This document shows, one piece after another, positions 4,585 to 51,847 of a stretch of 64,000 nt of DNA; positions within the stretch are counted from its first letter, which is position 1; the number at the start of each line of letters is the position of its first letter. The stretch lies in sequence record NC_015287.1. One strand, 5' to 3'. The notes beneath the pieces were generated by a model. That model did no database searches, had not been told where the DNA came from, and worked only from the letters and a program-made list of their open reading frames with translations. A program made the position numbers and the translations under genes.

Positions 4585-4585
4585 C

Positions 4586-4593
4586 TATAAATA
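4586..4593 (+). promoter_or_regulatory. T4-type late promoter TATAAATA
   Basis: Exact T4 late consensus, intergenic, 20 nt before the ATG at 4614. Confidence 0.8.
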
Positions 4594-4613
4594 AAGAAAA
4601 ACGTTTTTAAGTA

Positions 4614-36268: not shown

Positions 36269-37054
36269 ATGGCCAACTATAGATCATATCGAAAAGTAAG
36301 ATCAGACCAACTAACTGCTGGTACTATTGGTATCAATAAGTTAGTGTCGGGTGTGACTCCAGATTATTGCGTCAAGATGTTTCATGGACATCCTTGCTAT
36401 TGCACACCTGGCTGTTGTTGTTTGTGGACTGTACCATCGGGAGTAGGTAAACTAACTATCGAACTCTGGGGTGCTGGAGGAAACGGACATGGACATTGTA
36501 CATGTAACAGATGTCAACACTATCAAGCTGCTGCTGGGGGAACATACAATACAAAAACCATCGCGACAACGCCTGGTTGTCAGTATCGTGTATGTGCTGG
36601 TGGAGTTTACAGATGTTGTTCTAGAGAATGTAATGGATGTCAAGGATGTTCTTCATACGTTAACGGTCACAACTTAAGTAACTTCTGTGCTCTTGGTGGT
36701 GCAAGAGGTTGTGCAAACCCAGACTGGTCTGTCAGATGTACATCTAGAAACTACTGTTGTGTATCGCCTGGAACATGGGGTGGAGACTTTGCAATGGCTC
36801 CTCACCAAAAAGGTTGGTCAGGTCACTGGAACTGTCACTGTACTGGTGCGGTTGCAAACACAATGTCATCAGGTGCTCCATTCTTAACATCTGAAGGTGT
36901 TGAGACTATGTTGGAACAGTGCTGGTCACGTTGCGGTTGCTGGACTGCTCCTTATGCGTCTGGTGGACAAGGTGCAATGACTACATACTGTGGTCGTTGT
37001 TGTGGACAGGGCGGTCAAGGCGGCTCTGGTGTTGTAAGAATCACTTACGTCTAG
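36269..37054 (+). CDS. Cys/Gly-rich fibre-tip/adhesin-like protein, paralog 1
   Basis: WTVPSGV..IELWGAGGNG...GG.GG.G.V.ITY glycine-rich fibre domain; 29 Cys in 261 aa (hand count). Confidence 0.8.
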   Translation: MANYRSYRKVRSDQLTAGTIGINKLVSGVTPDYCVKMFHGHPCYCTPGCCCLWTVPSGVGKLTIELWGAGGNGHGHCTCNRCQHYQAAAGGTYNTKTIATTPGCQYRVCAGGVYRCCSRECNGCQGCSSYVNGHNLSNFCALGGARGCANPDWSVRCTSRNYCCVSPGTWGGDFAMAPHQKGWSGHWNCHCTGAVANTMSSGAPFLTSEGVETMLEQCWSRCGCWTAPYASGGQGAMTTYCGRCCGQGGQGGSGVVRITYV

Positions 37055-37068
37055 GAATTTAAACAGAA

Positions 37069-37863
37069 ATGGCAAGTTATTCATCATACAAAAAGATTAA
37101 TGGAGATCAGTTAGAGGATAATACCCTCAACGCTAGTAGTTTTAGTGGTTCTCCAAACTGTACCTACGGCGTAAAATGGGTATTCGGTATCATGTGTCGT
37201 TGTTCGCCTGGTTGCTGCTGCAACTGGACAGTTCCTTCGGGAGTGGGCAACATGTGGATTCAGGCCTGGGGTGCTGGAGGAAATGGTACTGGTGCATGTT
37301 CATGTAACAGATGTCAACACTATCAATCTGGTGGTGGAGGATACTACAACTCCAAGATGATTCAAACCAACAGTAATTGTTCATATACTGTATGTGCTGC
37401 TGGAGTTTACAGATGTCTCTCTAGAGAATGTTATGGTTGCGTAGGTTGTTCATCCTATGTAAATGGACATAACTTATCAAACTTCTGCGCTATTGGTGGA
37501 TGTAGAGGTAATGCCAACCCAAGTTGGAGTACTTCTTGTAACTCTCTGAATACATGTTGTAGACAGCCTGGAAACAACGGAGGAGACTTCGGAATTGGTA
37601 ACCACGGTTCTATCTGGTCTGCATCTAGACACGATACTTACAGAGGTTGGTGTCACTGTTACCACTACGGTCAGAGACCTACTTCTGCACCGTTGATTGG
37701 TACACAAGTTACTCAGTCTATTAGAGAATGTTGGATTCGTTGTGGTTGCTGGATCGTACCTTATGGTCACGGTGGACAGAGTGCTATGACTACATATTGT
37801 GGTAGATGTTGCGGTCAGGGTGGTACTGGCGGTGGCGGACTCGTCAAAATTACATACTTCTAA
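37069..37863 (+). CDS. Cys/Gly-rich fibre-tip/adhesin-like protein, paralog 2
   Basis: Aligns end to end with its neighbours; 28 Cys in 264 aa (hand count). Confidence 0.8.
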   Translation: MASYSSYKKINGDQLEDNTLNASSFSGSPNCTYGVKWVFGIMCRCSPGCCCNWTVPSGVGNMWIQAWGAGGNGTGACSCNRCQHYQSGGGGYYNSKMIQTNSNCSYTVCAAGVYRCLSRECYGCVGCSSYVNGHNLSNFCAIGGCRGNANPSWSTSCNSLNTCCRQPGNNGGDFGIGNHGSIWSASRHDTYRGWCHCYHYGQRPTSAPLIGTQVTQSIRECWIRCGCWIVPYGHGGQSAMTTYCGRCCGQGGTGGGGLVKITYF

Positions 37864-37873
37864 GGGAAAGTAA

Positions 37874-38662
37874 ATGGCTTCTTATTCAAGTTATAAAAAA
37901 GTCTCAAATGACAGAATCATTGATGCTTCGATCACTTCATCGAAGGTTCAAGCTGGTTCATTCTCAAACTGGTGTGTAAAATGGGTCTATGGTCATCCAT
38001 GTTACTGTACACCTGGCTGCTGTTGCAACTGGACTGTTCCTACTGGAGTGACAAGAATCACTTGGGAAATCTGGGGTGCTGGTGGTAACGGACACGGTGC
38101 ATGTTCATGTAACAGATGTCAAAACTGGCACGGTGCTGGTGGTGGATACTATAATACAAGAACTATCTCCACTACTGCTGGATGTCAATATACTGTATGT
38201 GCTGCTGGTGTTTACAGATGTTGTTCTAGAGAGTGTACAGGGTGTTGCGGATGTAACTCCTATGTAAATGGATATAACCTCTCTAACTTCTGTGCCTTAG
38301 GTGGTGTCAGAGGTTGTGCAACTGGTGACTGGTCATCAAACTGTTATTCACAGTTCCATACTTGTTGTATGCAACCTGGCGCCCACGGTGGAGAGTTTGG
38401 AATGGGTAACCACGGTGGTAACTCATACAGACCTGACGGATTCAACTGTCACTGTTTCTATAACGAAGGATTACCAACAGGTGCTCCATTCATCGGAACT
38501 CTTGGTGTTTCTTACGGACAAAGACAGTGTTGGATGCGTTGCGGTTGCTGGACAGTTCCCTATGGACACGGAGGACAAGGTGCGAACAGTAACTACTGTG
38601 GAAGATGCTGTGGACAAGGCGGACAAGGTGGATCAGGACTCGTTAAAATCACCTACGTCTAA
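37874..38662 (+). CDS. Cys/Gly-rich fibre-tip/adhesin-like protein, paralog 3
   Basis: Aligns end to end with its neighbours; 30 Cys in 262 aa (hand count). Confidence 0.8.
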   Translation: MASYSSYKKVSNDRIIDASITSSKVQAGSFSNWCVKWVYGHPCYCTPGCCCNWTVPTGVTRITWEIWGAGGNGHGACSCNRCQNWHGAGGGYYNTRTISTTAGCQYTVCAAGVYRCCSRECTGCCGCNSYVNGYNLSNFCALGGVRGCATGDWSSNCYSQFHTCCMQPGAHGGEFGMGNHGGNSYRPDGFNCHCFYNEGLPTGAPFIGTLGVSYGQRQCWMRCGCWTVPYGHGGQGANSNYCGRCCGQGGQGGSGLVKITYV

Positions 38663-38742: not shown

Positions 38743-38768
38743 AGGGGGTTTATAACCCTCTTTTTTTT
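38743..38768 (+). terminator. Rho-independent terminator
   Basis: AGGGGGTT-TAT-AACCCTCT stem followed by a T run. Confidence 0.7.
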
Positions 38769-39622: not shown

Positions 39623-39652
39623 AAGATCCTCCTAATAAGAGGATCTTTTTTA
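39623..39652 (+). terminator. Rho-independent terminator
   Basis: Perfect 9-bp inverted repeat AAGATCCTC-CTAATAA-GAGGATCTT followed by T's. Confidence 0.8.
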
Positions 39653-39656
39653 TTAC

Positions 39657-40316
39657 ATGTTTGAAGTAAATCCTGTCGAAATTACCGAAATAAAAAGATG
39701 TTACGACTACGATAGAATGAGTGACATTGGATATAAATGGAGGAAAGTATTTGTTATAGATGACTTCTACAAGAATCCAGATGAAGTTAGAGACTACGCT
39801 TTGTCATGTGAAAGGACAAATGACAAAGAACATTGTGGCGGTCTCATAGGAACAAGAGTTGTTGAAGATAGACCAGACATGGTTGATAATTTGAAACCAG
39901 TTTTCAAAGAACTCTGCCAACATCCAGAGTGGACAAATCTACAATTTAGTGAGGGAATGTTTGACTACAGATGGGACAGTCAAAAGTTCTGGGTCAATCA
40001 TACAACCAATGAAGATATAAATGAAAGATTTACTAAGACTGTTTATTGTTTTACCCACCATAGAGATAGAGATTCTAGTTGGGCTGCTCTGGTTTATCTG
40101 AACAAAGATGAGGAATGTGACGGTGGAACAGATTTTTACAAATACAGAGAAGACCATGCTTATGGGGATTACGACATAAGAAAAGACATAACCTTTACAT
40201 GTCCAATGAAATATAATAGAATGGTAATGTATGAAGCAAGTTGCACTCATGGTGCGACCTTAAATCGCACAATGTTTAAAGAATATCCTCGTCTGGCACA
40301 GGTATTTTTTATGTGA
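39657..40316 (+). CDS. DUF6445-like / 2OG-Fe(II) oxygenase-fold protein
   Basis: IDDFYKNPDEVR, HRD, WAALVYLN, GGTDFY, MKYNRMVMY...HG...RLAQVFF. Confidence 0.7.
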   Translation: MFEVNPVEITEIKRCYDYDRMSDIGYKWRKVFVIDDFYKNPDEVRDYALSCERTNDKEHCGGLIGTRVVEDRPDMVDNLKPVFKELCQHPEWTNLQFSEGMFDYRWDSQKFWVNHTTNEDINERFTKTVYCFTHHRDRDSSWAALVYLNKDEECDGGTDFYKYREDHAYGDYDIRKDITFTCPMKYNRMVMYEASCTHGATLNRTMFKEYPRLAQVFFM

Positions 40317-40334
40317 CTATATACTATAGGAATT

Positions 40335-41582
40335 ATGAGAACTATGAGATCAAAAGCATTCTTCGTCAATGGTGGGGCAGGGAGAGTAATAAGTTCAATA
40401 CCAGCATTTGAAAAATATGCAGAAACCCATGATGATTTTGTCATCGTGTGTGAAGGAGGTACTGATTTCTTCAAAGGACATCCTACATTAGACGATAAGG
40501 TCTACGACCACTGGCATAAAAGAGTATTCCAAGAACATATTAAACACAGGGATTGCGAGAGTCCAGAACCATACAGAGTATGGCATTACTACAATCAAAA
40601 GTGCAATCTAGCACAAGCATACGATATGGAAATCAATGGGTTAGAAGAACCCAGAGAACTTCCTAAGCCAACAATTCATCTCAATAAGTCAGAGGTTATT
40701 GCTGCTTATAATGTTGTTGAAGAAATTAAATCTGTTACTAAGAAAGATAAAGTAATTGTAGTTCAACCATTTGGTAGATCTGTTGAACAGATGGGAGAGT
40801 TTATTGCAGATCCAACTTCTAGAAGTATGTCTCTCACAGGAGTTGTAGATATCATCAACGCTCTTAAGAAAGATTATGCAGTGGTTGTGATGAGTGAACT
40901 TCATTTCCCAGTTGAAGAGAATGAAGAAAAATATCCTATTGCTAGACCTCAAATTTCTGACATGAGAGTTTGGGCTGGTGTGATTGAGATTGCTGATCAC
41001 TTCTTAGGATGTGACAGTATGGGTCAACACATTGCAAGAGCATTTGATAAGACTGCAACTGTTGTAATTGGATCTACATACCCAGAGAACATTAGTTATC
41101 CAGGCCATAAGGACTTTGATATTATTGATGTGGGAGATGGTCGTAGAGAGTATGCTCCTATTAGAATCGCAATGGATGAAAGAGTAGATCGTTTCAATGA
41201 TGAAGCGATGGAACTAAGTAAAAAACAGATTGATGAAGTCGTTGCATCTTGTAGAAAAAGATTAGGTAAACCAAAAGCATATACTGGTACTTTTGTTCCT
41301 CCACAACAACAGCAGGGACAATCTTGTTCACCAAGTCAACCTCAACAACCAGCTATTGCATCACCAGTGCAATCACAGTTGAATAATTTACCTACTTCAA
41401 ATTGGACTCCTTCTGCGACACAAACAACTAATCCTATGATGAGTGGTGCTCCTAAACCTACCTTTACTATGGAACCACCAAAACCAAAAAAACCAAAGAA
41501 CAAGAAAGGTTTCCAATCTGAAATTAAAAATCTGTTAAAATCCGATAAAGATAACGCAATTACTATAGAAAAGAAGAATTGA
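40335..41582 (+). CDS. Glycosyltransferase, GT9 (heptosyltransferase)-like, with Gln/Pro-rich C-terminal tail
   Basis: VIVVQPFG and DHFLGCDSMGQHIARAFDKTATVVIGST resemble the GT9 DSG..H.A.A...P.V..fG.T signature. The start may be 40344. Confidence 0.6.
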   Translation: MRTMRSKAFFVNGGAGRVISSIPAFEKYAETHDDFVIVCEGGTDFFKGHPTLDDKVYDHWHKRVFQEHIKHRDCESPEPYRVWHYYNQKCNLAQAYDMEINGLEEPRELPKPTIHLNKSEVIAAYNVVEEIKSVTKKDKVIVVQPFGRSVEQMGEFIADPTSRSMSLTGVVDIINALKKDYAVVVMSELHFPVEENEEKYPIARPQISDMRVWAGVIEIADHFLGCDSMGQHIARAFDKTATVVIGSTYPENISYPGHKDFDIIDVGDGRREYAPIRIAMDERVDRFNDEAMELSKKQIDEVVASCRKRLGKPKAYTGTFVPPQQQQGQSCSPSQPQQPAIASPVQSQLNNLPTSNWTPSATQTTNPMMSGAPKPTFTMEPPKPKKPKNKKGFQSEIKNLLKSDKDNAITIEKKN

Positions 41583-41586
41583 GATT

Positions 41587-43389
41587 ATGACACAATGGAT
41601 TGCTGCAATCGCTAGAGGTCACAACTCTGGTGTATGCCTACTGAAAGATGGACAATTAGTTTTCTCTATTGAAGAAGAGAGACTATCAAGAAAAAAATAT
41701 GATGGAGGTCCTATGGCTTCCATGATTAAGATATTGGATTATACCGATACACTTGATTATCTTGTAGTTGCACATACACAACCTCTGGATGAGGCTGGAA
41801 GAAATGACTTTACAGGAGAACCTATCTACGTTGCTCTTGCAAGAAAACTGGGTCTTATTGATCGTAAAGCAGATGTCTATAAACATCCTCAAGTTGTAGA
41901 TTACAGTCATATCCATCATAAACTTCACTCCGCTTGTGCTTTCTATAGGTCTGGATTTGAGTCTGCCGTATCTGTCATTGTAGACGGTGCAGGGACATTT
42001 ATTCCAATGCAGATTGATGGTGAACAGGAGATGACATGGGAATTAGAAACCATTGTCAACTGTGCATATCCTGATAAATTTAAAACTCTATACAAACATC
42101 AAGGAGGTAGAGGTCCTTGGGGTGCTGCAAAAATAGACAATTTCCCATCTGAGAGGGAAGATGAAGAAGGTACTCATGAATTACTTTTAGATGACTCTGC
42201 TGGAATTGTTAAGGCATACGAAGCAGTAACACAATATTGTGGATGGGCTCCGATTGAGGCTGGTAAAACTATGGGACTTTTCCCATACGGAAAACCTAAT
42301 AATGAAATTCCAGACATTTATACAAACTATGATGGTAGGAGCGATTGGGTTACTACCAATAGAGATCTCATTGTACCTACTTATCCTAATGGTGCAATCG
42401 TAAACAAAGGTAGATTCTTGGAACTAAGAGAACCTCAAGATCCAAGTACAGTAAAAGACATTACAAAGTTAGATAATCGCAGAGACATGGCACATGCGAT
42501 TCAAACTGAATCTCAATCTATGGTATTAGATTTGATTCGCAAGGCAGTTAAGATGAGTGGAGAGAAGAATGTTGTTCTCTCTGGTGGATATGGATTAAAC
42601 TGTGTTGCAAACTATTGGTATCTCGAACAGTTAAAAGATGAGGGTATCAATTTATTTGTAGAACCAGTAAGTAATGATGCTGGAACTGCAATCGGTGCTG
42701 CATATTGGCATTATCATAAAGTAACAAAGGACAAGGAGGTTAAACCAATGATTACCGATCTATATTATGGACCTAAGTATGAATACGATACTGAATACAT
42801 TACAGACCTTGCTAATTATTACAATGCGACTAGAATCTTTGAGGCTACACATGAAGATGCAGTTGATCTAATTACTAAGAAGAATATTGTTGCAATGTTC
42901 CAAGGTAAATCGGAGGCTGGTCCTAGGGCATTGGGTAATAGATCTATCATGTATGATCCCAGAGATCCAAAAGGAAAGGATCATGTCAATACTATCAAAC
43001 GTCGTGAATACTTCAGACCTTTTGCTGGTTCTATTCTCAAAGAACATGTTCACGAATGGTTCGATCTTCGTGGTATGGATGAAACTCCATTCATGATGTA
43101 CGCTGTTAGGTGTCAGGAAGGAATCAAAGAAAAGATTCCAGCAATCATCCATGTTGATGATACATGTAGAATTCAAACAGTTACAGAAGAAGTCAATCCT
43201 CATTACTATAATTTAATCAAAACTTTCTACGATAAGACAGGATGCCCTATCATCTTTAATACATCCTTCAACCTAGGCGGAGAACCTCTTGTAGAGACCC
43301 TAGACGACGCTCTGAGGACTCTTGCAAACAGTTTGATAGAATACCTCTATCTGCCTGAATATGGTCTTATGATCGAAGTAAAGAACTGA
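41587..43389 (+). CDS. Carbamoyltransferase, NodU/CmcH/TobZ family, full length
   Basis: EEERLSRKK, HHKLHS, GKTMGLFPYG, SGGYGLNCVAN, NDAGTAIG, EAGPRALGNRS, KRREYFRPFA, NTSFNLGGEPLV. Confidence 0.9.
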   Translation: MTQWIAAIARGHNSGVCLLKDGQLVFSIEEERLSRKKYDGGPMASMIKILDYTDTLDYLVVAHTQPLDEAGRNDFTGEPIYVALARKLGLIDRKADVYKHPQVVDYSHIHHKLHSACAFYRSGFESAVSVIVDGAGTFIPMQIDGEQEMTWELETIVNCAYPDKFKTLYKHQGGRGPWGAAKIDNFPSEREDEEGTHELLLDDSAGIVKAYEAVTQYCGWAPIEAGKTMGLFPYGKPNNEIPDIYTNYDGRSDWVTTNRDLIVPTYPNGAIVNKGRFLELREPQDPSTVKDITKLDNRRDMAHAIQTESQSMVLDLIRKAVKMSGEKNVVLSGGYGLNCVANYWYLEQLKDEGINLFVEPVSNDAGTAIGAAYWHYHKVTKDKEVKPMITDLYYGPKYEYDTEYITDLANYYNATRIFEATHEDAVDLITKKNIVAMFQGKSEAGPRALGNRSIMYDPRDPKGKDHVNTIKRREYFRPFAGSILKEHVHEWFDLRGMDETPFMMYAVRCQEGIKEKIPAIIHVDDTCRIQTVTEEVNPHYYNLIKTFYDKTGCPIIFNTSFNLGGEPLVETLDDALRTLANSLIEYLYLPEYGLMIEVKN

Positions 43390-43856
43390 TGAGAGAAATT
43401 AAAGAATACGAGTATCCATTTCAAAAAGATAATACTGAATTGGAGGTAGAGATTCTTAATGCTACTGCTCCTGTACCTGATAGTTATCTTGAAAGATCGG
43501 AACATTGTCACATAGCACAATGGTATAGTTATCCACAAAAAATAAGAAAATTTATAGAGTGGATAGAAGAAACTACAGACGCTAAGGTAAAAGATTTATG
43601 GGGAGTTTGGTATCGTGATGATGGTGGTCTCAAGTGGCACACACATAAAGGAGATTTTAGATATTCATTTGTTTACTACATAAAGGTTCCAGAGGGTAGT
43701 TCATCAATATATTTTAGCGAAGATCCAGAAACAACTGAACCAACTTTTTTTCATCCAAATCAAGGAATTTGTGTGGTATGGGATAGTGATTTTCCTCATT
43801 CTGTACCTCCTGGCAAACATAAAGGTAGATGCGTATTATCAGGTAATTTAAAATGA
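43389..43856 (+). CDS. Putative 2OG-Fe(II) oxygenase / cupin-fold protein
   Basis: WHTH...SFVYYI...PHSV...RCVLSGN pattern; TGATG coupling to the upstream gene. Confidence 0.6.
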   Translation: MREIKEYEYPFQKDNTELEVEILNATAPVPDSYLERSEHCHIAQWYSYPQKIRKFIEWIEETTDAKVKDLWGVWYRDDGGLKWHTHKGDFRYSFVYYIKVPEGSSSIYFSEDPETTEPTFFHPNQGICVVWDSDFPHSVPPGKHKGRCVLSGNLK

Positions 43857-44962
43857 ATAAAGCCGTTGGAATAATGATATCTCATGATGCTTCCATTTGT
43901 ATAGTGGAAGACGGAGAGATAAAAAGCATTATGCAAGAAGAAAGATGCAGTCGTGCAAAACATGATGTCTATCCATCAAAAGCATATCAAACACTGTTCG
44001 GAGATAATTTTCCTTCATCAGAATTATTGAACATTGAATTTGGATTCACTGGTATTAAGTATTGGCCTGTAAATGACTTGGCACAAGACTTTCATCTATC
44101 GTTTGAGCAAGAGGTATATTCTTTTATAAGTTTTGTTATTAATAAATGTTCTGATCTCCATACGAAGAAGATAAAGATGGAGGAGAAAGATACAGCAGCA
44201 TGGAATACTAAATGGCACGGTACTAGATATGATGAACATCATACATTTCATGCTTTTTCTGGATTTTATAATTCGGGATTTAAAGATGCAGCAGTTTTAG
44301 TTGTTGATGGTATGGGTAATCCGTCAACAATAGATTCTGAAAATCATGAAGTAGCAAGTATTTACACAGTAGAATATCCAGCTAAAATTGTATGCCATTC
44401 AAAGCAAGAGACACCAAAACATCATGCAGACTCAATGAAGGAAAGACATTCTCATACAAAATGGCCTATGGGAATTGGTATGGTGTACTCTTCTATTGCT
44501 GCTTATTGTGGATTTGGCCAGTTGGGATCTGGTAAAATAATGGGTCTAGCATCGTATGGTAAAGAAGATCCTAATATAAAACCTTTTGTTTTTGATAACT
44601 ATGAAATTAATTCTAGACTCTTCTATAGAACACATGATGGTTGTATTTTTATAGATTATGACTATCTACCAAGAGATTGGGACTACAGAAATTGGAATGA
44701 AGATGTTCAGAAAATCGCTAATTTATGCTGGAGATTACAAAAAGATTTTGAAAGGTGGATGACTAAAGCAATATTAGATACTTTGGAAATAACAGGAAAG
44801 AAAAATATTGTTTTGAGTGGTGGTTGTGCTATGAATTGTGTGGCAAATTATGAATACTTAAAACACCTACCCGAAGGTGTTAAACTATTTGTAGATCCTT
44901 TATGTGAAGATGCAGGCATCTCTGTTGGATTAGCTCAATTTTTATACTGGTCTAATCAATGA
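43853..44962 (+). CDS. Carbamoyltransferase N-terminal (Kae1-like) domain only
   Basis: HDASIC, QEERCSRAKH, EHHTFHA, KIMGLASYG, LSGGCAMNCVAN, EDAGISVG; ends without the C-terminal domain. Confidence 0.85.
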   Translation: MNKAVGIMISHDASICIVEDGEIKSIMQEERCSRAKHDVYPSKAYQTLFGDNFPSSELLNIEFGFTGIKYWPVNDLAQDFHLSFEQEVYSFISFVINKCSDLHTKKIKMEEKDTAAWNTKWHGTRYDEHHTFHAFSGFYNSGFKDAAVLVVDGMGNPSTIDSENHEVASIYTVEYPAKIVCHSKQETPKHHADSMKERHSHTKWPMGIGMVYSSIAAYCGFGQLGSGKIMGLASYGKEDPNIKPFVFDNYEINSRLFYRTHDGCIFIDYDYLPRDWDYRNWNEDVQKIANLCWRLQKDFERWMTKAILDTLEITGKKNIVLSGGCAMNCVANYEYLKHLPEGVKLFVDPLCEDAGISVGLAQFLYWSNQ

Positions 44963-45513
44963 AATTTGAAGTTTACGATGATTTTATATCACCAACATAT
45001 CAAAATATATTAGAGAGTTTGCTCTCTGATTATAATACTAGGTGGTCATATCAACCACACATGGATTATGGTGAACGTGGAGCTCCACAATTTTTAATTG
45101 GCATATTAGATAATGGAAATGTAGGAGATCAAATGTTGCACTTTGCTCTTCTGGGTTTGGTTAGTAAGATCATAGATGAACAATTACCTAACTGTATTAA
45201 TACTAGAATAAGAGCAATACTACAGACTCCTCTAGTTGATCCACCAAAGCATTATATTCCCCATACTGATGACAGAGGATCTGAATTTTGGAGTGCTATT
45301 TACTATGTAAATGATGCTACAGGTGACACATATCTGTTTGATCAAAAGACAGATGATGTTGATAATCCAATAGATTGGAGGTGGAATCATAGTGATTCTG
45401 TATCTCCCAAAAAAGGAAGATTAATCATATTTCCCTCTCAACATTTTCATGCTGGTTCTTCACCTAAATCAGACAGAAGAATGTTACTCAACTTTAATTT
45501 TGCCAAAAGATGA
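44959..45513 (+). CDS. 2OG-Fe(II) oxygenase-like protein
   Basis: PHTD...SAIYYVND..GDT...PKKGRLIIF...HAGSSP...RMLLNFN. Confidence 0.75.
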   Translation: MKFEVYDDFISPTYQNILESLLSDYNTRWSYQPHMDYGERGAPQFLIGILDNGNVGDQMLHFALLGLVSKIIDEQLPNCINTRIRAILQTPLVDPPKHYIPHTDDRGSEFWSAIYYVNDATGDTYLFDQKTDDVDNPIDWRWNHSDSVSPKKGRLIIFPSQHFHAGSSPKSDRRMLLNFNFAKR

Positions 45514-46997
45514 AAAGAATTAAAAGACTAGTTATTGTTGGTGGCGGAACTGCTGGATGGATTACTGCATCATGGTTTGCTCGTAGATGGTCAAAACATT
45601 TTGAAGTAGTAATTATTGATAAGTCTCAACCAGAAAGAATTGGTGTGGGGGAAGCGACTCTTCTTAGTTTCCCAAATGTCATGAAGATGATGGGATATAA
45701 ACCTAGTGATTGGATGAGGGAAGTAGATGCAACATTTAAGTCTGGTATTTTATTTCCTGGCTGGGGTCATGAAGATGCGGAGATTTGGCATCCTTTTTCA
45801 TTTACAAGTGTAGGAGATACTAAAGTACCTTTATACGATCTATGGCAATCATTCCAAGAAAAATATGATCTAAAAAATATCTCTCCAATGTATAATTCTT
45901 CCTTGAAGAATAAAATTGAGACCAACTATGTACATGATTCTTATGCCTTCCAACTTGACTGTGGAAAGTTAGTACAGTTTTTGATGAGACATACTACACC
46001 TTATTGCAAATATATTCAGTCTGATGTAGTAGATATCATTAGAGATGGTCAATCGGATGATATAACTAAATCTAACATTAAAGAATTGGTGTTAGATGAT
46101 GGATCAAGAATTGATGCTGATATATTCGTAGACTGCACTGGTTGGAAACAACTTCTTGTTGGTAAAGACAATGTTGATTTGAGTGATAGACTGTATATCA
46201 ATGCAGCTCTTGCTGGTAGAGTGAAGTATGAAGATTATAGAAAAGAACAACATCCATACACTGCCTGCCCTGCACAAGAACATGGTTGGATATGGAAGAT
46301 TCCCACAAGATCCAGAATAGGAACAGGATATTGTTTCAATAGAGATATCAATGATCCAGATGAAGTAAGACAAGCGTTCTCTGATCACTGGAATGGTAGA
46401 ATCAAACCAGATGAAATGAGATTACTTGACTGGAAACCACAATATGTCAAAAATTTCTGGGTGGGTAATGTAGTTCCTATTGGACTTTCTGCTGGATTTA
46501 TTGAACCACTGGAAAGTACAGGACTTGCATTAATGATCAGAGGTGTGGAGTATCTGGAAGAAAGTCTTTACGGTGGTTACTTTAATAGTAAAGTAGAAGC
46601 ACCTTTCTATGATGCTAAAATGAAGTGTAGTTATGAGAGTGCTGTTGATTATGTAAACATGCACTATTCTTACTGCCGTAGAAAGGGTAGATTCTGGGAT
46701 TACGTTAGATCTAAATACCAGAAATCAGCAACACAAAAACTATTTGAGGAATACATCCAAGATCCCAATGTGAGGACTCCTCAAACTGGAAAGGTGGGTT
46801 CATTTTTTGATGGCACTAATTATCAAGTCTGGTTACTACAGTTAATGACAGATAAAATTAACTCTAAAGAGTATTGGAAAACTGACACAACTGTAATCCC
46901 AAGATTAGATAACTTTGTTGAAAACACGTTGGTTCAAAATCAATTAAACTCTATTGATCAGAGTCAATATATCACACATTTAGATACACTAGAATGA
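45510..46997 (+). CDS. Flavin-dependent halogenase, tryptophan halogenase (PrnA-like) family
   Basis: GGGTAGW FAD motif, GVGEAT, ATFKSGI (catalytic Lys position), FVDCTG, GWIWKIP (WxWxIP), FIEPLESTG. Confidence 0.9.
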   Translation: MKRIKRLVIVGGGTAGWITASWFARRWSKHFEVVIIDKSQPERIGVGEATLLSFPNVMKMMGYKPSDWMREVDATFKSGILFPGWGHEDAEIWHPFSFTSVGDTKVPLYDLWQSFQEKYDLKNISPMYNSSLKNKIETNYVHDSYAFQLDCGKLVQFLMRHTTPYCKYIQSDVVDIIRDGQSDDITKSNIKELVLDDGSRIDADIFVDCTGWKQLLVGKDNVDLSDRLYINAALAGRVKYEDYRKEQHPYTACPAQEHGWIWKIPTRSRIGTGYCFNRDINDPDEVRQAFSDHWNGRIKPDEMRLLDWKPQYVKNFWVGNVVPIGLSAGFIEPLESTGLALMIRGVEYLEESLYGGYFNSKVEAPFYDAKMKCSYESAVDYVNMHYSYCRRKGRFWDYVRSKYQKSATQKLFEEYIQDPNVRTPQTGKVGSFFDGTNYQVWLLQLMTDKINSKEYWKTDTTVIPRLDNFVENTLVQNQLNSIDQSQYITHLDTLE

Positions 46998-47395
46998 ATA
47001 GAATAGTATGGTGCAATGGCACGTTTGACATCTTGCACCCAGGCCATATTGAATTATTCAAGGTTGGTAAATCTCTAGGAGATAAACTTATTGTAGCAAC
47101 AGATACGGATGAAAAGATACGTCAAGATAAGGGTGAAACTAAGCCCGTCAATAATCTTTGTGACAGAATTTCGATGTTACAAGCAATAAAATACATTGAT
47201 GAAGTATTTTATTTTAATGACCGAAAAGAATTGGAAGGGTTGATAGAATTATACTCTCCTGATATACTATTGCTGGGTGATGATTGGAGAGGTGGTGACG
47301 TAGTTGGTATACAATATGCCAAAGAAGTAAGGTTTCTACCTCGCCTAAATTATTCAACAACTAATATTATTAGTAAGATTCGTGGAACAGTTTAA
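46994..47395 (+). CDS. rfaE2: Heptose-1-phosphate adenylyltransferase (RfaE/HldE domain II, cytidylyltransferase-like)
   Basis: NGTFDILHPGH, KGETKPVN, GDDW, YSTTNII. Confidence 0.8.
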   Translation: MNRIVWCNGTFDILHPGHIELFKVGKSLGDKLIVATDTDEKIRQDKGETKPVNNLCDRISMLQAIKYIDEVFYFNDRKELEGLIELYSPDILLLGDDWRGGDVVGIQYAKEVRFLPRLNYSTTNIISKIRGTV

Positions 47396-48221
47396 TGTAA
47401 TTGTTATTGGTGATAAGTGTACTGATAAGTACATCTATGGGGAATGTAGTAGATTAAGTCCAGAACAACCTGTACCTGTCTTAGATAAGAAAAAGGTTGA
47501 AGAAAAGCCTGGTATGGCAGGCAATACTGAATTGAATCTCAAGGCATTTGGTATTAACACCGTTCTACTTTCCCAGAGAGAAGAAATTACAAAGACTAGA
47601 TTCGTTGATACCAATAGTGGATATCAATTAATGCGTTTGGATGAAACTCCCAAGTGTGGTAGAATTGCAAATGCAGAATTGAAAATGGCATTTATGCACA
47701 TGAATCCACATGCTGTAGTCATTTCAGATTATGACAAAGGATATCTCACAGAAAATGATCTGTGGTCTATATGTCATAATGTCAACAGACCAGTATTTGT
47801 TGATACTAAAAAACGTAAACTATTCCAAAAAGATAATGTATTCTGGAAGATAAACAAAAAGGAATATGATCTTTTGGATGAGAGTCACATGCCTGATGAG
47901 AAAAATCTTATTGTTACTTTAGGATCAGAGGGTGTGATGTGGAGAGGATTAGTTTTTAAACCAGAAGTAGTCAAAGTATTTGACGTTTGTGGTGCTGGAG
48001 ATACCTTCCTCTCGGCTTTAGTCTACGAATTTTTAAGGACTAACAATATGCAGAAGTCTATTGAATTAGCAAACAAGGCTGCTGCAATCTCAGTAACTCA
48101 TCCTGGCGCTTATTACTTGACTAGGAGTGATATTGATTCACTATATGGAGAAGAAAATGGAGAAGTTAAAGATCAGCAAATCGGATCTAATGCACCACAG
48201 GTTGCAAGCGTGGTTGCGTGA
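47382..48221 (+). CDS. rfaE1: Heptose-7-phosphate kinase (RfaE/HldE domain I, PfkB family)
   Basis: RLSPEQPVPVL, PGMAGN, ISDYDKG, VFDVCGAGDTF. Confidence 0.8.
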   Translation: MEQFNVIVIGDKCTDKYIYGECSRLSPEQPVPVLDKKKVEEKPGMAGNTELNLKAFGINTVLLSQREEITKTRFVDTNSGYQLMRLDETPKCGRIANAELKMAFMHMNPHAVVISDYDKGYLTENDLWSICHNVNRPVFVDTKKRKLFQKDNVFWKINKKEYDLLDESHMPDEKNLIVTLGSEGVMWRGLVFKPEVVKVFDVCGAGDTFLSALVYEFLRTNNMQKSIELANKAAAISVTHPGAYYLTRSDIDSLYGEENGEVKDQQIGSNAPQVASVVA

Positions 48222-48369
48222 TCATACATGCCAAGATATTGAATACTTGGGAGAACAGGAAGACCACAATGGTGAAATGAAACATCTGTATCGTATTGGC
48301 GAACATAAAGTATTTCACGATCAAGTTGAAGAATTGGAAATGGTCGAAGTAGATGAAGACGAAGATTGA
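48157..48369 (+). CDS. Small hypothetical protein
   Basis: ATG at 48157 with GGAG upstream (the ORF track uses GTG 48127); MHHRLQAWLRDH motif; overlaps the kinase 3' end by 65 nt. Confidence 0.55.
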   Translation: MEKLKISKSDLMHHRLQAWLRDHTCQDIEYLGEQEDHNGEMKHLYRIGEHKVFHDQVEELEMVEVDEDED

Positions 48370-49057
48370 ATATATTTTCAGAGTAGATGGATCTGATATT
48401 TTTTATACGCCAGAAACAAATGGTGGTGGAGATTACTTCTTTACAGAATACCTAAACTTAGTCATGGAGAACTATGGCAGAGTTCATCATCTCATGGAAT
48501 GGTGTAGTGGACCTGGATTCATAGGTTATGGAATGATGGCAACTAATCTTTGTGATCATCTTACTCTATTAGATAAATTTGAACCAGCAGTAGAGGTAGC
48601 AAAGAAAACTGCTGAGAATTCATTCATAAAGACTATAGATCTTGTAGATACTGAGAAGGTATATCATCGTAGAGTTTTTCCTCGTACAACAATATATCAT
48701 TCAGATACTTGTTCAGTGTTATCCGATTATAAACTGGATCTGGTTGTAGGTAATCCTCCCCATTTTGAGTGTAAGGAAGATGCAATCAAAGCTCTTAGTA
48801 AGTTGGGTGGTACACCTTTATTCAACAATCACCTGTCAGAAATTCTTTTAGATCCAAATTGGGATGCTCACAGAGATATGTTTAGAGAAGTATCGACAAG
48901 ACTCTCAGATGATGGTACAATATGTTTGCAACTTCACTCAGGTGGATCTAGTGCTGATACATTTAGGTCAATGGTCGAGGAAGCTGGCATGAGAATTACT
49001 GGAACCTTCAATAGTGTTCAGTATGATGACATCTATTACATGGAGGTTAAGAAATGA
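48353..49057 (+). CDS. Class I SAM-dependent methyltransferase
   Basis: EWCSGPGFIG (motif I), LLDKFE, DLVVGNPPHF. Confidence 0.8.
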   Translation: MKTKIEYIFRVDGSDIFYTPETNGGGDYFFTEYLNLVMENYGRVHHLMEWCSGPGFIGYGMMATNLCDHLTLLDKFEPAVEVAKKTAENSFIKTIDLVDTEKVYHRRVFPRTTIYHSDTCSVLSDYKLDLVVGNPPHFECKEDAIKALSKLGGTPLFNNHLSEILLDPNWDAHRDMFREVSTRLSDDGTICLQLHSGGSSADTFRSMVEEAGMRITGTFNSVQYDDIYYMEVKK

Positions 49058-49389
49058 GGTACTGCGTTGATATTGATAATACTATCTGCACACCCACAGT
49101 AGGTAGAGATTACTCCAAGGCAGAACCATGGCCAGCTCGTATTGACATCATAAATAAATTATATGATGATGGTCATAACATTACCTATTTTACTGCTAGA
49201 GGTATGGGTAGATTTGGTGATGATCCAGATGCAAGTGTAAAAGCATCTGCTTTATTGTTTGACCTCACAGAACAACAACTTAAAGATTGGGGATGTAAAT
49301 ATCATACTCTAATTTTAGGTAAACCACATGCAGATTATTTTATCGATGACAAGGGGGTGAACGCAAATGAGTTCTTTGAACGCTTCTAG
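49054..49389 (+). CDS. Small HAD-family phosphatase (capsule-biosynthesis-phosphatase-like)
   Basis: VDIDNTIC (DxDxT), YFTARG, GKPHADYFIDDK. Confidence 0.75.
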   Translation: MRYCVDIDNTICTPTVGRDYSKAEPWPARIDIINKLYDDGHNITYFTARGMGRFGDDPDASVKASALLFDLTEQQLKDWGCKYHTLILGKPHADYFIDDKGVNANEFFERF

Positions 49390-49768
49390 AAGACCTCGTA
49401 ATGCCCGTGCAGCAGAACCAGTAAAATATGTACCTAAAGGTTGGGGATATGAAAAGTGGATCGCCAACTGTGAAAAGTATTGTGGCAAGTTATTGTTTAT
49501 TGCCAAAGATAAACAGTGTTCATGGCACTATCACAAACTAAAAGACGAAGTATTTTTTGTACAGAGTGGTAAGATAAAATTATATCACGGATGGGATGAT
49601 GATATTGAAAAGGCAGAAATAACTATCCTTAGAAGAGGAGACAAGTTTCATGTGCCTATTGGTCTGAAACATCGTATGTTTGCACTAGAAGATACCGAAC
49701 TTTTTGAGTTCAGTACAGAACATATGGATTCAGATTCTCATAGAATTATGCCTGGCGATCTTCTATGA
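49367..49768 (+). CDS. Cupin-domain protein, sugar isomerase-like
   Basis: PKGWGYEKWI, SWHYHKLKDEVF, GLKHRM, EFSTEH. Confidence 0.75.
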   Translation: MSSLNASRRPRNARAAEPVKYVPKGWGYEKWIANCEKYCGKLLFIAKDKQCSWHYHKLKDEVFFVQSGKIKLYHGWDDDIEKAEITILRRGDKFHVPIGLKHRMFALEDTELFEFSTEHMDSDSHRIMPGDLL

Positions 49769-50379
49769 TTGAAAAAATTACTGATATGATATATGTTGAA
49801 AGAGATGTTCTTTCACAGGATCAGTGTGATGAGATGATAAAATATTTTTGGGATAATCCACAATTACACGATGATGGCAAGGTAGAACATTTTAAGGATG
49901 GTGAATATCAAGGTAAGTTAGTAAACAAGGAACATAAAAATTGTATTCAATTTCAGTTTGAACCTCATCATAAGTATGCAAACTTGATGACACAAGTTAT
50001 TCAAGACGCATATTTGAATTACAGATATCAACTACCAGTTCTACCAGCATCAGACCTTGCAATATTGGATTACACCATTAGGTGTTATGAAAAAGGTAAA
50101 GGTATATTTAAAACACATGTTGATCAAGCAGAGGGTGGAACTATATCCAGACTATTTGCTTGTATCATATATTTGAATGATGTAGATGAAGGAGGAGAAA
50201 CATTCTTTCCTGATTGGAATATTGCTTGTAAATGTGAAAGAGGAAAGATACTTTTATTCCCATGTAATTGGATATTCCCACATGGATCTAACCCCAACAT
50301 ATCTCACCACAAGTATATACTAACTGCTTTTATAAATCTAAACTATGAAATGCCCATGTATGATGAAACAGTAGTATAA
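49765..50379 (+). CDS. 2OG-Fe(II) oxygenase (prolyl-4-hydroxylase-like)
   Basis: FKTHVD, IIYLNDVDEGGETFF, LFPCNWIFPHGSNP...KYI. Confidence 0.85.
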   Translation: MIEKITDMIYVERDVLSQDQCDEMIKYFWDNPQLHDDGKVEHFKDGEYQGKLVNKEHKNCIQFQFEPHHKYANLMTQVIQDAYLNYRYQLPVLPASDLAILDYTIRCYEKGKGIFKTHVDQAEGGTISRLFACIIYLNDVDEGGETFFPDWNIACKCERGKILLFPCNWIFPHGSNPNISHHKYILTAFINLNYEMPMYDETVV

Positions 50380-51152
50380 TCATGTTGATACCATGAGTTA
50401 TCTGCACAGGTATATTCTTGATACTTACCTTCTAGATGTTTGGGGAAGGGGATTACTTCAATCTCCGCCCCTTCTTTTTTGGCAATCAATTCCGCAACCT
50501 CTTGGAAAGAGATAGGATTGCCAGTCCCAACATCGTAGATGCCACTCCCTGCCGTATTATCTAGGACAACATCTACTACATCATCCACACATACAAAATC
50601 TCTAAAGGCATATTCAGAGTCTTCAAAAATTTTAATTACCTTGGTTTCTCTAGCTTGTTTAGTAAACTTACTAATTGGACTTGCTTGATCTCCTTTATGT
50701 TCCTCACCATCTCCATATACATTGAAGTATCTGAATCCCTGCACTTGTTCAAACTCATCCATGTGATCTAGAACCCAGTAATCTACAGTTGCTTTTGATA
50801 GTGCATAGAAGTTTAGTGGATTGATAGTTCCTTTCAGATATCCATACTCACTATGAATCTTACCATAAACAGATGCAGATGAGGCATATTTGACTGGGAT
50901 AGAATATTCTATTGCTTTTTCAAACAGTGCAATAGAGAACTCTATATTATACTTGTGAATTTTATTTACGTCTGTCTCTGTTGTACTTGATATGGCTCCC
51001 TGATGTAGAATCATCTCTACCTCATCCCACTTATCATATTGATTTAAGAAATCAAAAGCACCATCTTTTTCAACTCTATAAAGATTTTCTGGATCGATTC
51101 TCTTTTCAAATGCTTGACCTATAAAACCTTTGTAACCTGTAATGATAATCAT
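50343..51152 (-). CDS. hldD: ADP-L-glycero-D-manno-heptose 6-epimerase-like NAD-dependent epimerase
   Basis: ITGYKGFIG, HQGAISSTT, YASSASVYG, PLNFYALSK (YxxxK), GFRYFNVYG, RDFVCVDD, YQEYTCAD. Confidence 0.8.
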   Translation of the reverse strand: MIIITGYKGFIGQAFEKRIDPENLYRVEKDGAFDFLNQYDKWDEVEMILHQGAISSTTETDVNKIHKYNIEFSIALFEKAIEYSIPVKYASSASVYGKIHSEYGYLKGTINPLNFYALSKATVDYWVLDHMDEFEQVQGFRYFNVYGDGEEHKGDQASPISKFTKQARETKVIKIFEDSEYAFRDFVCVDDVVDVVLDNTAGSGIYDVGTGNPISFQEVAELIAKKEGAEIEVIPFPKHLEGKYQEYTCADNSWYQHDYTTVSSYMGIS

Positions 51153-51847
51153 AAGGGAAAATGTAATGGTATAAAAAATACTTGGACTAGTCGGTAAGTA
51201 TCACCTTCAAACCAGCCTGGTTTGTCATATGGGGTGTGAAGAATTTGATCTGGATACATTATCATTCTATTATACTTCATTTCTGCTAAATGTATCAACT
51301 CCCATGGACCTACACTATCGGTAATATGTTCCTTCCTCCATATTCCGTCTTGATTTGGATTAACTTGCTGTCCATTGTATGTATAAAACCCAGTGCCACC
51401 CTTACATTCTTTGGGTTTATTGAGATAAATTAGTCCAGCCCATCCTCTTGTCTCATATTCTGGTGGGTAGTCCACATGAGGTATTATATTCGTAAATTCT
51501 GACTGGGTTACATTGACTGAGAAGGGAACAGGTTTACAGGCTTCTTTAAATGTCTTCACTTCATCCATCTTTAATCCATACACATTCTCTGCTATTTGTT
51601 GCCATATTTCGTGCATATGATCAAGATTCATATTCATGTCTACCCTCACGCCAGGTAGATTGCCACAAACTCTTGGGTTATTTGTGCCTGGGCATCTGAG
51701 TGCAAGATTCCTTACCTTGTCTGGATTCTTGTAAAAATTATCAATATAGACTATGGGAGTTTCTTGCCAACCCATCAATTCTACTCTTGCTCCCAACTCT
51801 TCATTGATTGCAAAGGTTTCTGACTCGTTTATAAAATACTTTTTCAC
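51149..51847 (-). CDS. DUF6445-like protein, paralog of 39657..40316
   Basis: IDNFYKNPDKVR, PHVD, WAGLIYLN, GGTGFY, MKYNRMIMY, RLVQVFF; GTG start; ATGA-coupled to hldD. Confidence 0.7.
   Translation of the reverse strand: MKKYFINESETFAINEELGARVELMGWQETPIVYIDNFYKNPDKVRNLALRCPGTNNPRVCGNLPGVRVDMNMNLDHMHEIWQQIAENVYGLKMDEVKTFKEACKPVPFSVNVTQSEFTNIIPHVDYPPEYETRGWAGLIYLNKPKECKGGTGFYTYNGQQVNPNQDGIWRKEHITDSVGPWELIHLAEMKYNRMIMYPDQILHTPYDKPGWFEGDTYRLVQVFFIPLHFPL

Follow-up and report, generated by a model that had tools for sequence, protein, structure and literature searches.

A putative nucleotide-heptose module beside the tail-fibre genes of cyanophage S-SSM7

Gene content and conservation of the cassette

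We analysed a stretch of 64,000 nucleotides (the window) from the genome of the T4-like cyanomyovirus Synechococcus phage S-SSM7 (Kyanoviridae; GU071098 / NC_015287; isolation host Synechococcus WH8109), and within it the interval 40335-51152, where relatives of bacterial ADP-heptose enzymes are encoded together with a GT9-like transferase and with other cargo (Table 1; positions are those of the window, to which 62000 is added to obtain the position in the S-SSM7 record). The original prediction had placed a heptose kinase, an adenylyltransferase, an HldD-like epimerase and a GT9-like transferase between fibre and neck genes, and all four indeed lie where it had put them, with E-values far below chance. 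These four genes account for ~3.3 kb of the 10.8-kb interval. A phosphatase, a cupin, two carbamoyltransferase genes, a halogenase, three 2-oxoglutarate (2OG) oxygenases and a methyltransferase had been overlooked, and ~60% of the interval is other cargo, namely the half carbamoyltransferase, the halogenase, the three 2OG oxygenases and the methyltransferase. The plus-strand genes of the cassette are tightly packed and mostly overlapping, with all frames intact, and the interval matches the S-SSM7 record at 100% identity and the cyanophage S-SSM6a at 99.8%.

A core can be recognised by comparison with other phages. In P-SSM2 seven genes are contiguous, encoding the GT9-like protein, the carbamoyltransferase, the adenylyltransferase, the kinase, the HAD protein, the cupin and, on the opposite strand, the epimerase. 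The same seven-gene order recurs in S-CAM3, Sf-FS3 and a metagenomic contig (L009), while a further contig (L007) matches it up to the contig end after the kinase gene, and S-CAM1 has the GT9-like and cupin genes. Gene order is kept across genera at 45-75% protein identity, and the cluster numbers given in the record, T4-GC 302-308, already hint at one unit. Relative to this core, S-SSM7 has insertions comprising the 2OG oxygenases, the half carbamoyltransferase, the halogenase, the methyltransferase and a small open reading frame (ORF), some of them common to Sf-FS3. The half carbamoyltransferase has an orthologue there, and the halogenase and the methyltransferase are absent from the cassettes of P-SSM2, S-CAM3 and Sf-FS3. 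It is possible that the halogenase, half carbamoyltransferase, 2OG oxygenases and methyltransferase, as lineage-specific insertions, tailor the product further, or that they are unrelated island cargo.

When 15 loci containing a GT9-like gene of cyanophage type were surveyed by tblastn, a full carbamoyltransferase gene adjoined it at all 15, fibre or tip genes lay 5' of it at 12 and heptose-synthesis genes lay 3' of it at five. The tightest coupling is that between the GT9-like gene and the O-carbamoyltransferase gene. Variants of this arrangement are seen in contig L012 (3049-6704), where the carbamoyltransferase gene is flanked by two GT9-like paralogues, and in contig L011, where an ORF of 322 residues without Pfam or PHROG match (8933-9901) stands between the GT9-like and carbamoyltransferase genes.

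The family to which the GT9-like protein belongs, phrog_8954, was seen only in phages; all 12 'genome' hits are contigs of marine metagenome-assembled genomes (MAGs), and those examined carry phage genes. These 12 contigs (L005-L016) are labelled Actinomycetota, Methanobacteriota, Flavobacteriales, Neomarinimicrobiota and others; all have the carbamoyltransferase, and in most there are also fibre or tip genes of cyanophages. They appear to be phage DNA wrongly binned into MAGs, the contigs of 335 kb and 153 kb among them. The GT9-like family is large: a word search gave 2636 clusters at 90% identity, and an exhaustive search gave 501 representatives at 50%.

The surroundings of the cassette are those of virion assembly. 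On its 5' side lie baseplate genes, very large fibre-like genes and then the gene for a tail fibre of 1477 residues (31784-36217), after which come those for three Gly-rich paralogues and for a protein whose domain is of the tail-assembly-chaperone type (gene at 38808). The Gly-rich paralogues (36269-38662; ~262 residues each; PF21722) are kept as a set 5' of the GT9-like gene in Sf-FS3, L005 and L007, and a DUF6445 gene also precedes the GT9-like gene in Sf-FS3, L005, L006 and L007. On the 3' side of the interval are gp13, gp14 and gp15 (51885 onward), the terminase and the sheath.

The basic observation of heptose genes at such sites is not new. As the original prediction had noted, they are known from cyanophage islands: those of P-SSM2, S-SM2 and S-SSM7 were published as 'LPS genes' (lipopolysaccharide, LPS) of unexplained role, the co-occurrence of T4-GCs 304, 305, 307 and 308 being noted explicitly (Sullivan 2005, 2010; PMC1079782, PMC3037559), and a later genome note lists cyanophage heptose genes again (PMC7378029). 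Within the limits of our searches, what appears to be new is the assignment to GT9 of T4-GC 302, which every record calls 'hypothetical'; one homologue at JGI has the COG name. The following also appear to be new: the reassignment of a 'phosphoheptose isomerase' as a HAD phosphatase and of a 'cysteine dioxygenase' as a candidate isomerase in place of GmhA, the invariable coupling of the GT9-like protein to an O-carbamoyltransferase, and the recurrence of this glycosyltransferase family in tail-fibre neighbourhoods of unrelated phages.

Table 1. Genes and terminator-like hairpins in and around the S-SSM7 cassette, in window positions
Feature	Position	Strand	Basis or remark
Terminator-like hairpin	38743-38761	+	TATAAATA comes directly after it (38768), before the chaperone-like gene (38808)
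Terminator-like hairpin, 9-bp stem and T-run	39623..39647	+	separates tip/chaperone genes from the sugar cassette
DUF6445 / 2OG-Fe(II)-oxygenase-like protein	39657-40316	+	PF20043 E 8e-9; PF13640 E 6.6e-4; phrog_1644
GT9-like protein SSSM7_120, 'hypothetical' in record	40335-41582	+	phrog_8954; putative heptosyltransferase
Full-length O-carbamoyltransferase, TobZ/NovN/GdmN/NodU type	41587-43389	+	PF16861 E 5.9e-60; PF02543 E 4.3e-26
Small 2OG-Fe(II) oxygenase, accessory insertion	43389-43856	+	PF13759 / PF13640
Half carbamoyltransferase, Kae1-like N domain only	43853-44962	+	PF02543 E 7.1e-19 over residues 4-361; no PF16861
2OG-Fe(II) oxygenase, 'denV' in record	44959-45513	+	PF13640 E 5.1e-9
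Flavin-dependent tryptophan-halogenase-like enzyme	45510-46997	+	PF04820 E 8.1e-82
HldE-C-type heptose-1-phosphate adenylyltransferase	46994-47395	+	TIGR02199 E 2.4e-29; phrog_7878
HldE-N-type PfkB heptose-7-phosphate kinase, GTG start	47382-48221	+	TIGR02198 E 1.9e-39
Small ORF SSSM7_128	48145-48369	+	annotated in record; no Pfam match for the overlapping longer ORF
Class I S-adenosylmethionine (SAM) methyltransferase-like protein	48353-49057	+	PF05175 E 1.3e-5; phrog_35227
Minimal HAD-type phosphatase, 111 residues	49054-49389	+	DxDxT at residues 6-10; PDB 9iqw E 2.4e-15; TIGR01689 E 8.5e-6
Metal-binding cupin (HxH..E..H), candidate isomerase	49367-49768	+	motif, structure model, gene context
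2OG-Fe(II) oxygenase, present in Sf-FS3 too	49765-50379	+	PF13640 E 1.1e-10
HldD-like ADP-glycero-manno-heptose 6-epimerase	50343-51152	-	TIGR02197 E 8.3e-63; 1eq2 E 1.5e-40
Second DUF6445 / 2OG-oxygenase-like protein, closes the island, divergent from gp13	51149-51847	-	PF20043 E 3.3e-16; phrog_1644

The GT9-like protein and its carbamoyltransferase partner

The GT9-like protein has 415 residues, of which approximately residues 1-320 form the catalytic core. Searching the PDB with the single protein returned nothing, and a shallow profile (A1) gave only three chance-level matches, none of them GT9-related. The wider family is what connects it to GT9. PF01075 (Glyco_transf_9) is matched by 40 of 62 diverse full-length homologues (best E 1.2e-8), other families recurring in no more than two members, and a deep profile of homologues (A3) finds WaaF (E 0.019), WaaC and a Veillonella GT9 protein (3tov) in the PDB, with the alignment lying over the donor-binding motif of the C-terminal domain. 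This conserved motif aligns with the donor-binding DSG..H of WaaC and WaaF, and D227, the counterpart of WaaC Asp261, is invariant. When a structure model of the protein was submitted to Foldseek, the top ten matches were all GT9 chains, at TM-scores of 0.3-0.45 that are not meaningful alone. A VIA structural search over 48,161 chains, independent of Foldseek, gave 3tov the highest score (Z 15.0), ahead of the GT9-like subunit of plant NDH (14.6), WaaF (13.7), WaaC (12.6) and TibC (11.9), with every other GT-B enzyme at Z 10.8 or less. Homologue Pfam matches, profile searches against the PDB, Foldseek and VIA agree, and we accept the product of 40335-41582 as a remote member with a GT9 fold, as the original prediction had proposed.

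Within GT9 the protein stands apart. It shares the GT-B fold of the GT9 heptosyltransferases (WaaC, WaaF, 3tov, TibC/Aah), whose chains are its top structural matches, but the phage family differs from WaaC and WaaF in an invariant N-domain motif (PEPY), in an Arg at the position of Asp13 and in a low-complexity, basic C-terminal tail, and its N-terminal (acceptor) domain is unlike that of LPS heptosyltransferases. Nor did we find a likeness specific to Aah/TibC: TibC came fifth in the VIA search, below LPS-type GT9 chains, and the Cys-rich iron-finger of TibC is missing from the GT9-like protein, no CxxC motif being present in the S-SSM7 sequence. Residues ~321-415 (41295-41582) comprise a disordered linker rich in Q, P, S and T, then a polybasic run and then an amphipathic helix that is short and conserved, and tails of the same pattern with other sequence are seen in the homologues of P-SSM2, Sf-FS3 and metagenomes. 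Such a tail may be a membrane-targeting or docking peptide.

The constant partner of this protein has both the Kae1-like N-terminal domain and the YrdC-like C-terminal domain. Its relatives in the PDB (7xb6, 9s2t, 3ven; E 1e-46 to 1.7e-49) are TobZ, NovN and GdmN, O-carbamoyltransferases that act on sugar or aglycone hydroxyls; against the NodU equivalog model it scores 136.7 bits, below the cut-off of 1000 bits. The same two-domain architecture is found in NodU/NolO, TobZ, NovN, GdmN and WapO (PA5005), the last being likened by description. The phage enzyme is coupled to a GT9-like gene, whereas WapO is coupled to the LPS-core cluster, and S-SSM7 adds a second, Kae1-only copy. The only carbamoylated heptose that we know of is the 7-O-carbamoyl-HepII of the Pseudomonas LPS core. 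Since an O-carbamoyltransferase gene constantly accompanies the GT9-like gene, the product in the phage is likely to be a carbamoylated heptoside. In Pseudomonas the modification is attributed to WapO (PMC8005017).

Candidate enzymes for heptose synthesis

For each core enzyme the best match is a heptose-specific family, and the catalytic motifs (the HldD residues, GAGD, HxGH and DxDxT) are kept, which bears out the view that these enzymes are of heptose type. The kinase is matched best among NCBIfam models by TIGR02198 (rfaE_dom_I; 135.6 bits, in three stretches), as against 52.8 bits (E 3.5e-14) for the ribokinase model, and has the PfkB fold (PF00294, E 3.2e-16) with a GAGD motif near residue 205. 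The adenylyltransferase has TIGR02199 (rfaE_dom_II) as its best model, at 102 bits compared with 75.7 bits for the TagD type, and carries the HxGH motif (as HPGH) and a C-terminal STT. The epimerase scores 212.4 bits with TIGR02197, a match that begins at profile position 51, its N-terminal region being ~25 residues shorter; the GxxGxxG motif is present as GYKGFIG at residues 6-12. Alignment with the structure of E. coli HldD (1eq2) shows the Ser/Tyr/Lys triad to be kept, as is the second catalytic Lys (K178 of E. coli), with SSA.., Y..SK and HKG as the matching stretches. Since all three score under their NCBIfam equivalog cut-offs (345, 181.5 and 274.6 bits for kinase, adenylyltransferase and epimerase), we take them to be divergent heptose-type relatives whose specificity for heptose we infer.

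The bacterial pathway requires in addition a phosphatase (GmhB) and an isomerase (GmhA). Judging from its sequence, the protein encoded at 49054-49389, called 'phosphoheptose isomerase' in records, is a HAD phosphatase and not an isomerase. The closest relatives of this protein of 111 residues are capsule-biosynthesis phosphatases (9iqw, 'capsule biosynthesis protein', and TIGR01689), not GmhB, and it is the obvious candidate for the GmhB step. As to GmhA, no SIS_2 (PF13580) match was found at E <= 0.01 anywhere in the S-SSM7 genome, and such a match was absent from all six phage genomes searched (S-SSM7, P-SSM2, S-CAM3, S-SM2, P-TIM68 and Bellamy), in a search that did find one in 11 of the 14 cellular genomes used as a control.

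An attractive candidate for the missing isomerase is the cupin, which lies in a heptose gene module in 35 of the 35 phage records that contain it. It has the classical two-motif metal site, HxH..E..H, and its structure model (predicted local distance difference test, pLDDT, 86.7) has as top VIA matches the cupin phosphomannose isomerases (PMI) of Thermococcus (7zvm, 7zvy; ~110 residues) at Z 15.8, a root-mean-square deviation of 1.5-1.6 A and 21% identity, with D-lyxose/D-mannose isomerases also among the best. These isomerases have the same small metal-cupin fold and the same metal ligands as the phage protein. Conversion of fructose-6-phosphate to mannose-6-phosphate is the six-carbon analogue of the GmhA reaction, and the change from ketose to manno-aldose catalysed by cupin PMI parallels it chemically; the substrate that we propose for the phage cupin would be one carbon longer, the function being assigned from gene context only.

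A second type of module points to the same role. In phage Bellamy (locus L022, 5994-9795) the cupin gene has on one side the gene for an HddA-like GHMP heptose-7-phosphate kinase (E 7e-83) and on the other that for an HddC-like guanylyltransferase (E 4e-17). Genes for a GDP-mannose-4,6-dehydratase-like enzyme and an RmlD-like reductase come next, and the set suggests an alternative GDP-alpha-heptose / 6-deoxyheptose route with a 6-deoxy-heptose as product. The ADP-beta and GDP-alpha heptose routes share only the isomerase and phosphatase steps, and the phage modules share exactly the cupin and the mini-HAD. Because the cupin is always found in a heptose module, in phages that lack GmhA, with the shared-step pattern of Bellamy and with a PMI-like structure, we propose that it acts as a sedoheptulose-7-phosphate isomerase, that is, as a non-orthologous replacement of GmhA. 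A literature search found no cupin-type sedoheptulose-7-phosphate isomerase. The label 'cysteine dioxygenase' that records give to the cupin and a JmjC reading of it were set aside, as its JmjC_2 matches are as weak as the isomerase ones and a 2OG-dependent JmjC enzyme would be larger. If the cupin supplied the GmhA step and the mini-HAD the GmhB step, the pathway would be complete. That GmhA is missing agrees with the 'near-complete' ADP-heptose pathway of the original prediction, a description that probably understates the pathway, as the two small proteins can fill the GmhA and GmhB steps.

Two further observations concern these modules. A glycosyltransferase gene and another carbamoyltransferase gene lie ~3 kb downstream of the GDP-heptose genes of Bellamy. 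In P-TIM68 (L021) a 'transketolase-like' gene beside the heptose kinase gene (3923-5068) matches the alpha (E 1.6e-20) and beta (E 3.6e-20) subunits of pyruvate dehydrogenase E1 and transketolase only at 9e-7; this fused E1 alpha/beta-type thiamine enzyme, by two-carbon transfer, might feed or modify the sugar.

Proposed route, acceptor and alternatives

On balance we consider it probable that in this interval the phage carries a module by which a nucleotide-heptose is made and used. Given the observed family assignments and synteny, its chemistry and the order of its steps would be as follows. The cupin would isomerise sedoheptulose-7-phosphate, an intermediate of the pentose-phosphate pathway, to D-glycero-D-manno-heptose-7-phosphate; the PfkB kinase would then phosphorylate O-1, and the mini-HAD phosphatase would remove the 7-phosphate in place of GmhB. 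The HldE-C-type adenylyltransferase would form ADP-D,D-heptose, which the HldD-like enzyme would epimerise to ADP-L-glycero-beta-D-manno-heptose. From this donor the divergent GT9-fold enzyme would transfer heptose to an acceptor, and the TobZ/NodU-type enzyme would O-carbamoylate the heptose, as WapO does with HepII in the Pseudomonas LPS core. The bacterial pathway to ADP-L-glycero-beta-D-manno-heptose uses the same PfkB kinase and cytidylyltransferase-fold adenylyltransferase (the two domains of HldE) and the same HldD-type short-chain dehydrogenase/reductase epimerase, and the order of its chemistry is presumed to be the same. The phage version differs in that kinase and adenylyltransferase are separate genes, a SIS-fold GmhA is lacking and a mini-HAD would stand in for GmhB, and in that it is encoded by a virus whose host is reported to have LPS without heptose.

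Several observations weigh against such a reading. On its own the S-SSM7 GT9-like protein has no Pfam or NCBIfam match, and PF01075 is not found even at E <= 10. The position of the catalytic Asp13 of WaaC is taken in its family by an invariant Arg (R17), in an N-terminal motif alignment that is weak, and this replacement could mean another catalytic mechanism or even another donor. The model of the protein is poor, with a mean pLDDT of 57.5 and values below 50 in the N domain. Every pathway enzyme scores under its equivalog cut-off. For the cupin, the CapF nucleotide-sugar epimerase domain, KdgF and auxin-binding protein come within one Z unit of the best match, and the family matches to isomerases are weak (Lyx_isomer in 19 of 20 members, MannoseP_isomer in 9 of 20). 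Contigs L010 and L011 have the GT9-carbamoyltransferase pair without adjacent heptose genes, and in S-SM2, P-TIM68 and Bellamy the heptose-synthesis genes lie away from the fibres, in a large 'LPS' island near hli and pstS with other glycosyltransferases.

Further points concern expression. Two terminator-like hairpins part the cassette from the fibre genes, and the late-promoter motif TATAAATA, with 6 matches as against 3.95 expected, is not enriched and has no match directly 5' of the cassette. In favour of use in nature, two studies provide four marine metatranscriptome libraries in which short contigs match the genes for kinase, methyltransferase, phosphatase, cupin, 2OG oxygenase, epimerase and halogenase at 95-99% identity; as presence in RNA libraries only, this is compatible with carry-over of DNA.

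What the acceptor would be bears on the purpose of the module. The likeliest candidate, if short of probable, is a protein of the adjoining tail-fibre module, so that the virion itself would be glycosylated. The original prediction had envisaged phage proteins (or the surface of the infected cell) as the destination of the sugar rather than the normal LPS core of the host. Placement after fibre genes, including in unrelated phages, supports the part concerning phage proteins by synteny only, and the location of the heptose genes of S-SM2, P-TIM68 and Bellamy in another island speaks against it. Distant members of phrog_8954, in which 24 invariant columns of the alignment are kept (23 not counting the start Met), are encoded in the N4-like Vibrio phage SBP1, between a 'tail fiber protein' and a 'tail family protein', and in the Aeromonas myophage HJ05, where a fibre-like protein gene precedes and the tail sheath gene directly follows. 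In either phage, the ~12.7 kb examined around the GT9-like gene yielded no heptose-synthesis gene. Vibrio and Aeromonas hosts make ADP-heptose themselves. That the cyanophages carry the pathway and that none of it was seen near the gene in these phages is coherent with the supply of ADP-heptose by the host, the former infecting hosts with LPS reported to lack heptose and the latter hosts that make it.

The three Gly-rich paralogues at 36269-38662 are natural candidate acceptors. Collagen-like Gly-X-Y repeats, which would be possible targets of hydroxylase and glycosyltransferase, were sought in the window, and none with five or more repeats was found. Virion glycosylation by mycobacteriophages and chloroviruses offers a precedent, with a glycosyltransferase gene among virion structural genes and virus-supplied sugar-nucleotide enzymes. 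The phage case differs from these in its sugar (heptose), its carbamoyl group and its glycosyltransferase family; we know of no glycan shown on any cyanophage virion. A reading in which DNA is glycosylated was set aside, since the GT9-like gene lies in the fibre module and not in the replication module, and T4-like cyanophages are, to our knowledge, without hydroxymethylase context.

Alternatively, the same pathway could serve a molecule of the host envelope (LPS, an outer-membrane glycolipid or a lipid-linked glycan) and remodel the surface of the infected cell, for example to block superinfection or change recognition, as held by the original 'LPS gene' hypothesis for cyanophages (PMC1079782, PMC3037559). 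We regard this as doubtful, and think it rather unlikely that the acceptor is a glycolipid in the membrane or envelope of the infected cell; other targets share the remaining probability. Characterised GT9 enzymes are mostly LPS-core heptosyltransferases and 3tov, WaaF and WaaC are among the best structural matches, but the N domain of the GT9-like protein is unlike that of LPS enzymes and Asp13 is replaced. The sole carbamoyl-heptose known to us sits in an LPS core. The LPS of marine Synechococcus, however, is reported for WH8102 and CC9311 to contain neither heptose, as the original prediction had stated, nor Kdo, the usual GT9 acceptor (PMC4515613). The large 'LPS' island of S-SM2, P-TIM68 and Bellamy, where heptose genes keep company with other glycosyltransferases, would suit an envelope target, yet the GT9-like gene is fixed beside fibre genes even in unrelated phage families. 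The C-terminal tail of the GT9-like protein resembles a membrane-targeting tail. Late surface remodelling would be of little gain to a lytic T4-like phage. Synteny leans to tail-fibre proteins, and the basic amphipathic tail leans to the membrane.

Two other explanations concern the interval as a whole. That it is a natural-product-like cluster for a soluble heptose small molecule, tailored by halogenation, hydroxylation, methylation and carbamoylation in the manner of ADP-heptose-derived antibiotics, we consider very unlikely. It would account for the fact that the closest solved relatives of the carbamoyltransferase are the antibiotic-tailoring NovN, TobZ and GdmN, and for a halogenase, three to five 2OG oxygenases, a methyltransferase and a half carbamoyltransferase standing in one overlapping block on the same strand. 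However, P-SSM2 and S-CAM3 have otherwise identical cassettes without these tailoring genes, and Sf-FS3 has only part of them, as expected of insertions and not of a core; in many cyanophage genomes single halogenase and 2OG oxygenase genes are found dispersed, and the interval has no scaffold-building enzyme such as a nonribosomal peptide synthetase (NRPS) or polyketide synthase (PKS). Sullivan et al. 2010 (PMC3037559) raised the possibility that such genes are non-functional 'stuffer' DNA or decaying cargo derived from the host. All enzymes scoring under curated family cut-offs and the shortened N-terminal region of the epimerase would fit decay, but we find this highly improbable in view of the intact frames, tight overlaps and retained catalytic motifs, the gene order conserved across genera, the thousands of conserved GT9-like and cupin clusters in ocean metagenomes, with polar residues of the GT9-like protein conserved, and the near-identical fragments in metatranscriptome libraries.

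Returning to transfer onto the virion, a more far-reaching scenario, which we think unlikely as a whole, is that cyanophages of hosts that make no heptose possess an ADP-heptose pathway rebuilt to be self-sufficient, with a previously unrecognised cupin-type isomerase for GmhA, and that a phage-specific GT9 clade and an O-carbamoyltransferase place carbamoyl-heptose on their own tail fibres, a virion glycosylation shared with Vibrio and Aeromonas phages that borrow the ADP-heptose of the host. Among the auxiliary 'LPS' genes of ocean cyanophages that lack an explanation, the heptose genes are some of the most widespread. If our reading of the module is right, it would explain why a virus bears a sugar-nucleotide pathway, as the host, its LPS being reported heptose-free, may not supply heptose. 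It would also tie the pathway to the known rewiring of pentose-phosphate metabolism by cyanophages, since sedoheptulose-7-phosphate is the precursor, provide a new enzyme family (cupin) for the first committed step of heptose synthesis, and point to tail-fibre glycosylation and carbamoylation as a determinant of host range or particle stability in abundant marine viruses.

Some minor features of the locus remain to be described. The hairpin at 39623-39647 ends 10 nt before the ATG at 39657 and so leaves no room for a separate promoter; sigma-70-like promoters are fewer than expected from shuffling. In one metatranscriptome run (X1) there is a single contig in which 47875 is connected to 49185 and the small ORF and methyltransferase gene are left out, with 24 letters on the shorter side. 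This junction fits, if weakly, a relative without the insertion, as in the kinase-phosphatase order of P-SSM2. Finally, some names in the record look wrong: 'denV / DNA endonuclease V' (44959-45513) is a 2OG-Fe(II) oxygenase, and both 'minor coat proteins' (39657-40316 and 51149-51847) are DUF6445 / 2OG-oxygenase-like. These doubtful names have spread through PHROGs and many cyanophage records.

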